A stretch of 64,000 nt of DNA from positions 1 to 64,000 of the forward strand of contig NIVC01001388.1 in NCBI GenBank assembly GCA_002269645.1, written 5' to 3'. The position numbers were made by a program, and so were the translations under genes. Position 1 is the stretch's first letter, and every line of letters starts with the position of its first letter. Positions 26,301 through 29,300 of this stretch are shown piece after piece. This DNA comes from Macrostomum lignano (taxonomy: Eukaryota). The notes beneath the pieces are model-generated. The model had not been told where the DNA came from. It made no database searches and saw only the letters and a program-made list of their open reading frames with translations.

Positions 26301-29300
26301 CTCTCTCGGTATCTGAGATATTCTCTTAGTATCTTAGATATTCTCTTAAATAGAGAATTAGAGACTTAGAGAGAGAGAGAGAGAGAGAGAGAGAGAGAGA
26401 GAGAGAGAGAGAGAGAGAGAGAGAGAGAGAGAGAGAGAGAGAGAGAGAGAGAGAGAGAGAGAGAGAGAGAGAGAGAGAGAGATGTTAGAGGTAGAGGGAG
26501 ATAAGAGGGAGTGAGGAAGAGATAAGAGGAAGCGAGGAAGAGATGAGAGGGAGCGAGGAAGAGATGAGAGGGAGCGATGATATCTTAGTATCTTAGATAT
26601 TCTTTTAGATAGTCACTTACTATTTTTTATAAATATTCATATACGTATTAATCATACGAGTAGATAGATCATCATATCTTGTATACAGCCTCTCCTGAAA
26701 GTATAACTTTCATATTATGTAACCTAGCGAAACCTTTTACTGTTTATAATGGAAGAAAGTGCAAAAATACCAAGGCAGCCAATGGCAGCCAATAGGAACC
26801 CTGGAACAGTTTCTGTTGGCCAAAGGGGAAGAAAGTTGCCTGCAAAAAACCTGCCACAAAATTCTTCTGCGACCAAGCAATAAAATCTCTTGGTTTTTCA
26901 ACTGTCCGCTCAGCTCTTGCTGCTAATTAATAAACAATAAATCAGCAATCTGATGGGTTCCAATCTGAGTAGCCCCGTGAGCAATCGGCAGTCCACCGCC
27001 ACCAAGGCCGCCAGCAATTTCTGGCACGAGATGACCAGCTTCGACGCCAATTACCATGGCAACGGCTATTGCATTGTCTCTTCTCCTAGTGGCATTCTTG
27101 CCCTGCCGCAGCAGCCGGCCTCCAACCCGGCCAACGATCTGGGCAAGTCCACGCCCCAGTCTGAGGAGGACAACAGCGCCGTCCAGGTAGACAGCAGCAG
27201 CCTGCGGGAGTTCAACACCAGCTATGCTTATTATTCAACGGCTATGCAGCTGCGGGCTCGCCGCCACAATGCCAGCGTTGTCAGGGCGGCTGGGTCGGCG
27301 GCTGAGCCGCCCAAGCTACCGCCTCGTCGGCCGCCGACTCTTAGCTTGGCTCAGCATCAGCTTCATCATCAGCAGCATAATTACGTTTACAGCGTTGGCT
27401 ATGCCGCCCCGAATCAGTTAGTCAAGCCTACCGCCGATGACTCGTTGCCATGGAAACTAAAACAACAGAAGCAGTTTCCTTCTCCTCATCCACCGCCGCC
27501 TCCGCCTCCCCCTCCACCAGTGCAGCAGCGCCTCAGCTTGATGCCTCATCACCAGCATCATCAGTCTGCTCCTGTCACTCCGTTCGATTGTCAGACAGCT
27601 TATCGCGGAGCTGGCAACCTCCGTCAGCGTCAGCGTCGACAGCAATTAAGTTATGCGTCCCCAATGCCGAACCTTGAGATTGCTGCTGCTGCTGATTTTG
27701 CTTGCGACTGGCGGCAGCAGCAGCAGCAGCTCCAGATTGACTTCTCCTGTTGGCTTCAACTGCCTGCGTTGGATTGGTCTCTTGACTCCTGTCTGGATAG
27801 CATTGATAGTCCGAAGCTGGGAAAAATGCTTTATAGAGACAGGTGAGAGATGTGCTCAGCTTCTTTAATGCTGTCATTTAGGAGAATTTTGACTGAAGTT
27901 TTAGCTACTTAATGAGTGTCAGGTCATTAGCGTAGGCTACCAGTAAGTGTCGGGTCATTAGTTTAGACACCAGTAATTGTCAGGTCGTTAGTGTAGACTA
28001 TTAAGTGCCAGGTCATTAGTTTAGGCTATTAAGTGTCAGGTCATTAGTGTAGGCTACCAGTAAGTGTCAGGTCATTAGTGTAGGCTACCAGTAAGTGTCA
28101 GGTCATTAGTGTAGGCTACCAGTAAGTGTCAGGTCATTAGTGTAGGCTACCAGTAAGTGTCAGGTCATTAGTGTAGGCTACCAGTAAGTGTCAGGTCATT
28201 AGTGTAGGCTACCAGTAAGTGTCAGGTCATTAGTGTAGGCTACCAGTAAGTGTCAGGTCATTAGTGTAGGCTACCAGTAAGTGTCAGGTCATTAGCGTAG
28301 GCTATTAAGTGCCAGGTCCTTAGTGTAGGCTTTCAAGTGTCAGATCATTAGTAAAAGCCATTATGTGTCAGGTCATTCATGTAGACCATTAAGTGTCAGG
28401 TCATTAGTGTAGGCTATTAAGTGTCAGGTCATTAGTGTAGGCTACCAGTAAGTGTCAGGTCATTAGTGTAGGCTACCAGTAAGTGTCAGGTCATTAGTGT
28501 AGGCTACCAGTAAGTGTCAGGTCATTAGTGTAGGCTACCAGTAAGTGTCAGGTCATTAGTGTAGGCTACCAGTAAGTGTCAGGTCATTAGTGTAGGCTAC
28601 CAGTAAGTGTCAGGTCATTAGTGTAGGCTACCAGTAAGTGTCAGGTCATTAGTGTAGGCTACCAGTAAGTGTCAGGTCATTAGCGTAGGCTATTAAGTGC
28701 CAGGTCCTTAGTGTAGGCTTTCAAGTGTCAGATCATTAGTAAAAGCCATTATGTGTCAGGTCATTCATGTAGACCATTAAGTGTCAGGTCATTAGTGTAG
28801 GCTATTAAGTGTCAGGTCATTAGTGTAGGCTACCAGTAAGTGTCAGGTCATTAGTGTAGGCTACCAGTAAGTGTCAGGTCATTAGTGTAGGCTACCAGTA
28901 AGTGTCAGGTCATTAGTGTAGGCTACCAGTAAGTGTCAGGTCATTAGTGTAGGCTACCAGTAAGTGTCAGGTCATTAGTGTAGGCTACCAGTAAGTGTCA
29001 GGTCATTAGTGTAGGCTACCAGTAAGTGTCAGGTCATTAGTGTAGGCTACCAGTAAGTGTCAGGTCATTAGCGTAGGCTATTAAGTGCCAGGTCCTTAGT
29101 GTAGGCTTTCAAGTGTCAGATCATTAGTAAAAGCCATTATGTGTCAGGTCATTCATGTAGACCATTAAGTGTCAGGTCATTAGTGTAGGCTATTAAGTGT
29201 CAGGTCATTAGTGTAGGCTACCAGTAAGTGTCAGGTCATTAGTGTAGGCTACCAGTAAGTGTCAGGTCATTAGTGTAGGCTACCAGTAAGTGTCAGGTCA

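Follow-up and report, generated by a model that had tools for sequence, protein, structure and literature searches.

Vertebrate SLK and LOK (STK10) and Drosophila Slik are built of an N-terminal STE20-type kinase domain, a long disordered linker, and a C-terminal coiled coil with the polo kinase kinase (PKK) domain. The alternative exon known from mammalian SLK is a short one situated in the coiled coil. In other kinase families, kinase-less products arise from internal promoters; examples are FRNK, which derives from FAK, and telokin/KRP, which derives from smooth-muscle MLCK. They compete with or modulate the full-length kinase, and neither is known to be N-myristoylated. A literature search retrieved no natural kinase-less isoform of SLK, LOK, or Slik. 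In LOK/SLK, the C-terminal domain localizes and regulates the kinase. On its own, this domain goes to the cortex and localizes to microvilli, and when present in large amounts it is dominant negative, suppressing ERM phosphorylation (PMC3518218).

The window, i.e. the whole 64,000-nt stretch of Macrostomum lignano DNA that was analyzed, contains a gene of the same architecture. Within its intron 7, a preliminary description had singled out a long open frame as a hidden alternative first exon for a kinase-less, potentially myristoylated isoform and had ranked an internal cassette exon second. This frame, designated exon 8 here, had no homologue beyond Macrostomum among 1.84 billion representatives and in this respect has no counterpart in vertebrate SLK/LOK or Drosophila Slik. 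The overall interpretation given in the preliminary description was partly supported.

The host gene and its public model

As judged from domain content and best matches, the host gene is a member of the SLK/LOK family (GCK-V, STE20-like) of kinases. The best PDB matches of exons 1-3 were STK10/LOK (1e-105) and SLK (1e-96), followed by the next kinases (MST, MAP4K) at ~1e-67. The M. lignano protein A0A1I8HL07 (UPI0007A278C3, "Protein kinase domain-containing protein", 1603 aa) has the same architecture. Pfam Pkinase covers its residues 34-292, and PKK (PF12474) covers residues 1400-1531 with an E value of 1.3e-11, above the gathering score. Its 11-exon structure carries over to the plus strand of the window with GT-AG at all introns.

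Exon 1 (11343..11717) encodes the MGLLDIL start and the beginning of the kinase domain, is 100% identical to residues 1-125 of A0A1I8HL07, and ends in the donor AAG/GTTGGT (slashes mark exon boundaries). The remaining kinase domain lies on exon 2 (13343..13775), placed by PDB and Pfam matches and by transfer from A0A1I8HL07. Transfer likewise placed exon 3 (14585..15247; end of the kinase domain and disordered linker), the short form of exon 5 (19679..19783), exon 6 (21004..21537; linker), and exon 10 (38234..38602; coiled coil). Exon 4 is given in the form used in the A0A1I8HL07-like model (16532..16935). Exon 7 (22291..22424), 100% identical to its counterpart, encodes the conserved ...KIQDQFID-R and ends TTC ATT GAT CG/GTGAGT at 22424 in phase 2. 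The first coiled-coil exon, exon 9 (37357..37747; (R)REQLREQK...), starts cag/A CGC GAG CAG at 37357 and has a phase-2 acceptor. Exon 11 (39166..39594), supported by transfer and Pfam, encodes coiled coil and the PKK domain and terminates at TAG (39592-94). Further forms are conceivable in the linker region: exon 3 has a stronger alternative donor, GCG/GTGAGT, at 15243, the open frame of exon 4 continues upstream as far as a potential acceptor (16240 or 16243), and a long form of exon 5 would end at 20002 (CAG/GTAAAT). An Rfam scan of the window returned a weak tRNA-like match only, away from exon 8.

A0A1I8HL07 represents a different copy, allele, or assembly from the window. The kinase exons and the C-terminal coiled-coil/PKK exons are 100% identical at the amino acid level; linker exons 3-6 differ by 9 substitutions in ~570 residues and a 13-aa polyQ indel. 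Where A0A1I8HL07 reads ...AKVAMEINI as exon 4 ends, the window has an in-frame TAA. The entry is an unreviewed automated model that reached UniProt via WormBase ParaSite (PMC5486357). Because it is automated and because at least one of its boundaries is impossible in the window copy, its junctions do not amount to proof of RNA. Contig searches for the open frame and for A0A1I8HL07 retrieved no encoding contig, metagenome scans with the protein encoded by the open frame and with the exact 30-mer at the start of exon 8 (chosen to match this sequence in genomic, cassette, or spliced-leader-joined form) gave no match, and SLK/STK10 was not found in the supplements of M. lignano papers. Homologue searches with the ORF and with the joined exon 7-exon 9 sequence were likewise negative, in an index that evidently does not include A0A1I8HL07, so that these negatives carry no weight.

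Exon 8 as a coding sequence

Exon 8 (26946..27842, plus strand; 897 nt, 299 codons) corresponds to residues 904-1208 of A0A1I8HL07. Its stop-to-stop frame opens at 26941, right behind an in-frame TAA (26938..26940), and it holds an ORF of 297 aa (26953..27846, plus strand) with the N terminus MGSNLSSPVS. A search with the exon 8 frame yielded a single match among the 1.84 billion representatives, UniRef100_A0A1I8HL07 (E 6.7e-190). The ORF aligned to its residues 906-1208, in the interior of a full-length protein with both kinase domain and coiled coil, and the flanking junctions (...QFIDR/NLMGSNLS...MLYRDR/REQLREQK...) correspond to the same splice sites as in the window. Thus, exon 8 is already annotated publicly, as a predicted internal 897-nt insert of a full-length SLK/LOK-family kinase; the term "hidden" was inaccurate because the exon is in UniProt.

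When the unique island 26580-27915 was dinucleotide-shuffled 5000 times, a single shuffle attained an open frame of 301 codons, and an origin of the exon 8 frame as a chance ORF was rejected. A tandem-repeat-derived ORF was also rejected, as the island, which lies between satellite arrays, is unique in the window. The encoded segment consists of 11% S, 11% P, 10% Q, and 10% A, so that its earlier characterization as Q/P-rich was roughly right, and its features include 11 consecutive prolines and PKLPPR, a motif of the PxxPxR type. It is predicted to be disordered (AlphaFold mean pLDDT 46), and a Pfam search of the ORF found no domain. Codon usage scored -0.05 bit per codon in the exon 8 frame versus -0.45 and -0.65 in the other sense frames and was like that of linker exons 5-7; this signal is weakly discriminating because one antisense frame scores nearly as high. 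Between the two copies, exon 8 differed by 3 substitutions in 297 residues and two in-frame indels, a divergence not faster than that of the bona fide linker exons 3-6, although the copies may have separated too recently for conservation to prove constraint.

Several of these properties would also be expected of a pseudo-exon, that is, a long open stretch, GC-richer and set between satellite arrays, which is unused or barely used and was picked up by gene predictors because its frame and splice signals fit by coincidence, the mRNA normally being spliced from 22424 to 37357. The restriction to Macrostomum, the low complexity and predicted disorder, the lack of a Pfam domain, the weak codon bias, the weak acceptor described below, and the automated nature of a model with one boundary that cannot hold in the window copy all point in this direction. 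The shuffle result speaks against it, as do a frame that is intact in two diverged copies with both indels in frame and with divergence not above that of real linker exons, and a consensus donor of the correct phase placed precisely where the frame ends. We regard a pseudo-exon as rather unlikely. Exon 8 is taken as an authentic, flatworm-specific coding exon of the SLK-type gene.

Given an ATG and a stop of its own (TGA, 27844-46) and its position on an island that is unique within the window, the ORF was also considered as an independent, unspliced 297-aa gene nested in the SLK intron. The stop, however, falls inside the consensus donor of exon 8, which has the phase needed for exon 9, and A0A1I8HL07 splices the frame into SLK. 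There is no AATAAA for 1.9 kb downstream, the next one being at 29809, past a satellite array, and no stand-alone 297-aa protein is on record. A nested gene is therefore highly improbable.

Splice signals and the probable cassette arrangement

The coordinates given in the preliminary description were all confirmed (ATG 26953, donor 27842/27843, acceptor 37357, and AG 26944-45). Among the donors of the gene, that of exon 8, GTGAGA after CAG (27843..27848), comes nearest to the GT[G/A]AG consensus for M. lignano (PMC8629364). With the sequence AGA GAC AG/GTGAGA and phase 2, it is compatible with the acceptor at 37357. The proposal that this donor joins the first coiled-coil exon is borne out by A0A1I8HL07, which independently has ...LYRDR/REQLREQK.... 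At the other end, the acceptor AG used by the A0A1I8HL07 model (26944..26945; part of a CAG) is the first AG past a branch-point-like CTAAT motif (26923..26927), 23 nt upstream of the exon, with two AATAAA hexamers (26929 and 26936) in between. Its pyrimidine content of 0.40 is indeed the lowest among the ten acceptors of the gene (the others have 0.55-0.75), as the earlier objection of a poor pyrimidine tract implied. This is not disqualifying, given the CTAAT at -23 and a first AG that is a CAG; the acceptor of the constitutive exon 11 is of the same pyrimidine-poor build, with CTAAT at -18.

The element has cag/C at 26945/26946, a CAG/GTGAGA donor, and a length of 897 nt. Being open in frame and in phase 2 at either end, it is compatible with both neighboring exons, as a cassette exon would have to be. 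On balance, exon 8 is probably, though by no means certainly, an optional internal cassette exon spliced from 22424 to 26946 and from 27842 to 37357. The arrangement in A0A1I8HL07 is the one that had been ranked second. The accompanying argument that a cassette would split the conserved DR-REQLRE junction was mistaken: the junction is retained upon inclusion because exon 8 also ends D-R (AG/A). Inclusion would set the linker, which ends ...QFIDR, apart from the coiled-coil/PKK part, which starts REQLRE..., by ~299 inserted residues. Such a lineage-specific disordered insert, with its proline motifs, would be expected to lengthen the tether between the kinase/linker part and the localizing, regulatory coiled coil. 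The exon, its splice signals, its fit to the reading frame, and its place in a full-length public model are observed; its incorporation into mRNA, the optional nature of that incorporation, and any docking role are inferred.

As well as the weak acceptor, two observations count against a pure cassette. The insertion point falls in a segment that is uninterrupted in other SLK/LOK proteins. In addition, a cassette does not predict an ATG two codons into the exon with a myristoylation pattern and 169 nt of ATG-free sequence upstream.

Possible alternative 5' ends in intron 7

The ATG of MGSNLSS (26953..26955) would be an internal methionine codon in a cassette and the initiator codon in a first exon; it is the internal residue 906 in A0A1I8HL07, the only model on record. 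The first-exon interpretation invokes an intronic promoter, initiation at MGSNLS, splicing from 27842 to 37357, and an N-myristoylated, kinase-less coiled-coil protein that would act as a membrane-tethered dominant negative or scaffold and might coexist with cassette use. The predicted size of ~690 aa was accurate, as the 890 nt from the ATG to 27842 lead to a spliced kinase-less product of 692 aa. This ATG is the first after a 169-nt ATG-free stretch (26785 to 26952), which is reached in 3.6% of shuffles, and an in-frame TAA lies 13 nt upstream. MGSNLSS fits the N-myristoylation consensus as claimed (PROSITE PS00008, tested as G-{EDRKHPFYW}-x(2)-[STAGCN]-{P} after Met) and is one of the 11 out of 2061 ATGs in the window (0.5%) that do so. 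Furthermore, exon 8 combines the strongest donor with the weakest acceptor in the gene, and the donor phase is compatible with exon 9. Since LOK/SLK's C-terminal domain is active alone (PMC3518218), a kinase-less product would, by analogy, plausibly be active. An intronic start that yields the non-catalytic C-terminal part would resemble FRNK and telokin/KRP, here as a proposal from sequence.

Against these points stands the sole public model, which enters exon 8 from exon 7 via the AG at 26944-45 and thus does not support a first exon. The exact kinase-less sequences of both copies (692 aa for the window, 698 aa for the A0A1I8HL07 equivalent) were absent from 15 billion proteins. More generally, none of seven constructed isoforms (kinase-less, with or without the cassette, long or short linker; window and A0A1I8HL07) had an exact full-length match in the same collection, these look-ups being a weak test because an exact full-length match was required. 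The features in favor of a first exon were all chosen after inspection of the sequence. In M. lignano, moreover, an acceptor near a 5' end without an upstream donor is expected to be trans-spliced (PMC8629364).

Tandem CCAAT boxes had been put forward as promoter elements. They are present upstream of the ATG, at distances of 174 nt (26779-83) and 164 nt (26789-93; both within 26779..26793, plus strand), and stem from one 10-bp tandem duplication in which GGCAGCCAAT occurs twice. They are no denser than the background of the window: CCAAT/ATTGG occurs at 3.2 per kb across the window, so that ~1.2 would be expected in the 373-nt upstream region. The boxes were therefore rejected as meaningful promoter evidence. 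A first exon driven by an intronic promoter, with initiation at ATG 26953 and the glycine of MGSNLS as residue 2 of the nascent chain, appears rather unlikely overall. For M. lignano, RAMPAGE data are available (PMC5730564).

A second product could also arise from inside a long unit in a way particular to this species, as in the M. lignano transcriptional units with several spliced-leader (SL) trans-splice sites (PMC5730564). The CAG at 26944-45 could also be an SL acceptor, and a separate SL-capped mRNA starting at 26946 would encode the kinase-less product. SL trans-splicing affects 30-39% of M. lignano genes, a branch-like CTAAT and the CAG are present, and the AATAAA hexamers directly upstream resemble an operon-type junction. 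The site AATCAG, though, departs from the motif enriched at trans-acceptors, [T/C]TNCAG, which is found at 9551 of 21,754 sites and hence is not obligatory (PMC8629364). The 35-nt SL ends in ATG, and upon joining to 26946 this ATG would be out of frame and would open a 9-codon uORF (MQSDGFQSE*) overlapping the MGSNLS start. From the units with several SL sites, the case of exon 8 differs in its acceptor, which misfits YTNCAG, in the out-of-frame ATG, and in that those units contain distinct genes and not portions of a single one. Cis donors upstream in the full pre-mRNA favor cis-splicing, and the 64,000-nt window does not contain the SL sequence. SL trans-splicing at exon 8 is considered very unlikely. 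A small probability is also left for two uses of exon 8, as a cassette and as the 5' exon of an intron 7 transcript (with its own promoter or by SL trans-splicing) encoding the N-myristoylated 692-aa kinase-less protein, in which the disordered, proline-rich segment would be followed by the SLK coiled coil.

As a cassette, exon 8 would give a conserved cytoskeletal kinase an alternative exon that is disordered and confined to one lineage, useful for curation of the M. lignano SLK locus and unsurprising. If the internal start were true, the product would be a lipid-anchored endogenous inhibitor or scaffold of the SLK/LOK-ERM pathway and a natural membrane-anchored counterpart of the experimental dominant-negative LOK/SLK C-terminal constructs, in an organism that offers transgenesis and regeneration assays.

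Host gene and its public model

The 297-aa open reading frame at 26953..27846 (+), starting MGSNLSSPVS, was searched with HMMER against 1.84 billion representative proteins. The single match was the Macrostomum lignano entry UniRef100_A0A1I8HL07 ("Protein kinase domain-containing protein"; here P0001), aligned over residues 906-1208 of 1603 aa with 93% identity (E 6.7e-190); no homologue of the exon was detectable in other species in this set. Judged by its sequence, P0001 is an SLK/LOK-family (GCK-V) kinase with the Pfam domains Pkinase (34-292) and PKK (1400-1531). Against the PDB, the window-encoded kinase domain scored 1e-105 with STK10/LOK, 1e-96 with SLK, and about 1e-67 with the remaining STE20 kinases.

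The 11 exons of P0001 mapped onto the window as an unbroken 1577-aa frame with GT-AG in all introns. The frame under study thereby became exon 8, and its earlier placement in intron 7 was correct. The boundaries in P0001 were those of an exact cassette (acceptor 26945/26946, donor 27842/27843), the protein reading ...KIQDQFIDR/NLMGSNLSSPVS...LGKMLYRDR/REQLREQKLL.... In the public model, exon 8 is already an internal cassette within the full-length kinase. This entry was generated automatically and is unreviewed; protein sets of WormBase ParaSite are passed on to UniProt (PMC5486357). It proves that the frame is intact in a second copy and that an annotation pipeline made the join to exon 7, which is proof of a gene model and not of RNA. 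As an independent model, P0001 also supports the splice from exon 8 to exon 9.

At the amino-acid level, P0001 and the window were 100% identical in the kinase and coiled-coil exons, with zero changes in exons 1-2 and 9-11. Linker exons 3-6 carried 9 substitutions in ~570 residues (1.6%) and a 13-aa polyQ indel. Exon 8, compared at the amino-acid level because P0001 was available as protein, had 3 of 297 residues substituted (1.0%) and two indels, of 2 and 4 aa, that keep the frame, and thus changed no quicker than the accepted coding linker. These sequence differences point to a different gene copy, allele or assembly, and the two copies may be very young. The Macrostomum lignano genome is reported to consist of 15% simple and tandem repeats and to hold duplicated blocks of 95% identity or more (PMC5730564), and the window is likewise rich in tandem repeats. 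By this repeat content and the identical exons, the window derives from Macrostomum lignano or a very close relative.

Exon 4 of P0001 closes with ...AKVAMEINI, whereas the window has ATT TAA at this point, so that this copy must splice at AAG/GTTGCC (16935), its only usable exon 4 donor. The mismatch at 16936-16953 (...PAKVAMEINI-TVAIAS in P0001) reflects either a one-T difference in a T-run between copies or an error of the public model or assembly. Alternative splicing seems to occur in the linker (15243-16935 and 19679-20002). P0001 pairs donor GTGA/GTTGGG (15247) with an internal acceptor (16532) and also takes the weak donor AGC/GTGTCC (19783). Stronger sites with longer open frames are GCG/GTGAGT at 15243 with acceptor 16240 or 16243 (a NAGNAG pair), and CAG/GTAAAT at 20002; the longer forms would gain ~96 and ~73 residues.

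Reading frame and splice sites of exon 8

The stop-to-stop frame starts at 26941, right behind an in-frame TAA (26938-40), and ends AGA GAC AG/GTGAGA with the ORF stop TGA inside the donor, which makes donor 27842/27843 phase 2. Exon 7 ends ...TTC ATT GAT CG/GTGAGT at 22424, also in phase 2, and exon 9 begins cag/A CGC GAG CAG at 37357. Read as a first exon, ATG to 27842 spans 890 nt and yields a spliced product of 692 aa; read as a cassette, 26946-27842 spans 897 nt. Both readings are in frame with the neighbours, and an independent nested gene is highly improbable. Frame, phase-2 donor and phase-2 acceptor at 37357 were all found as in the preliminary description, the observation of which is confirmed: exon 8 is real.

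Inclusion as a cassette had been said to split the conserved junction DR-REQLRE. This objection did not hold, since exon 8 itself ends ...GAC AG, encoding D-R with a split Arg like exon 7 (...GAT CG), and inclusion restores the junction on the insert's 3' side. The poor pyrimidine tract reported for the acceptor at 26944-26945 is true, the pyrimidine fraction of 0.40 over -23..-4 being the lowest of ten acceptors (the others 0.55-0.75). It is offset by a branch-like CTAAT at -23, by CAG as the first AG after this motif, and by the likeness to the acceptor of constitutive exon 11 (CTAAT at -18, A-rich spacer, AAG). The donor CAG/GTGAGA is the gene's best match to the Macrostomum lignano consensus GT[G/A]AG (PMC8629364). 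The combination of strong donor and weak acceptor is as compatible with a regulated cassette as with a first exon. We slightly favor an optional cassette exon; exon 8-skipping forms had no exact match among 15 billion proteins, a weak negative.

A pseudo-exon existing in prediction only is unlikely. The 301-codon open frame lies in a unique island (26580-27915) flanked by satellite arrays, and its length was reached by one of 5000 dinucleotide-preserving shuffles (mean longest frame 110 codons). On a codon-usage score trained on the gene's other ten exons, the exon 8 frame obtained -0.05 bit per codon versus -0.45 and -0.65 in the remaining sense frames, similar to linker exons 5-7; the test is weak because one antisense frame scores -0.15.

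Possible alternative starts and a candidate kinase-less product

The preliminary description had proposed a hidden first exon, a claim left unsupported, the public model having exon 8 as an internal cassette. A promoter-driven first exon giving a candidate kinase-less product, possibly alongside the cassette, is unlikely. In its favor, ATG 26953 is in first-AUG position with an in-frame stop upstream, the donor is strong and the acceptor weak, and MGSNLSS fits the PROSITE myristoylation pattern, as the proposed consensus had implied; only 0.5% of window ATGs do so. The ATG follows an ATG-free stretch of 169 nt, matched by 3.6% of shuffles; this stretch and the myristoylation pattern were picked post hoc. 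The tandem CCAAT boxes are present (26779, 26789) as two copies of one 10-bp tandem duplication, but show no excess over background (3.2 per kb in the window, ~1.2 expected in the upstream region). By analogy, a kinase-less product would be plausible: the LOK/SLK C-terminal domain by itself localizes to microvilli and at high expression is dominant negative on ERM phosphorylation (PMC3518218). Against it, the exact 692-aa (window) and 698-aa (P0001) forms were absent from 15 billion proteins, again a weak negative. No naturally occurring SLK/LOK/Slik isoform lacking the kinase was found in a literature search.

Alternatively, the 35-nt spliced leader, carried by 30-39% of Macrostomum lignano genes, might be joined at the exon 8 acceptor, which is very unlikely. 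Several trans-splice sites occur in ~7% of transcriptional units, and an acceptor without upstream donor tends toward trans-splicing (PMC5730564, PMC8629364); if a transcript began in intron 7, CAG 26944-45 would probably take the leader. However, AATCAG departs from the enriched YTNCAG motif, and the ATG at the end of the leader would fall out of frame and open an upstream ORF of 9 codons that spans the MGSNLS start. Both points make this route less attractive. Three of the 11 AATAAA hexamers of the 15-kb intron (26879, 26929, 26936) lie at 26879-26941, within 70 nt upstream of the acceptor. The cluster may have arisen by chance, the stretch being A-rich, or may represent poly(A) signals beside a trans-splice-type junction.

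Surroundings and character of exon 8

Intron 7 consists mostly of long tandem arrays, at 22433-23856, 25158-25774, 26368-26577, 27915-29301, 31912-32908, 35333-36053 and 36506-37324 (periods 42, 21, 2, 31, 37, 25 and 32 bp). Several of these arrays contain spurious long ORFs in both orientations, and two arrays flank the 1.3-kb island of unique sequence that holds exon 8. A dispersed ~265-bp repeat at 34580-34845 and 17344-17608, 91% identical between introns, looks like a tRNA-derived SINE; it has a weak Rfam tRNA match (30.7 bits, 34781-34849, minus strand), and ARAGORN found no tRNA in it. Elsewhere, LTR-type retrotransposon fragments with broken frames and other sequence between them occupy about 51600-58710 on the minus strand (reverse transcriptase 51600-52936, aspartyl protease 57740-58357, gag-like CCHC zinc knuckle 58252-58707). 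A highly regular 161-bp satellite runs from about 59990 to the window end at 64000, every unit beginning an overlapping 122-aa ORF without Pfam match. Upstream of the plus-strand SLK gene, two GC-rich minus-strand ORFs (161 and 143 aa; 5879-7391), also without Pfam match, look like exons of a neighboring gene. Positions 1-2500 form a repeat block with marked strand asymmetry (GC skew ~-0.63, AT skew ~+0.55).

The exon 8 ORF contained no Pfam domain, and AlphaFold gave it, as a single sequence, a mean pLDDT of 46. S and P each make up 11% of the sequence and Q and A 10% each; there is a stretch of 11 consecutive prolines as well as the motif PKLPPR. On the best reading of sequence and predicted structure, exon 8 would be an intrinsically disordered insert that is specific to this lineage and bears docking motifs of the proline type, from which we infer a putative docking role.
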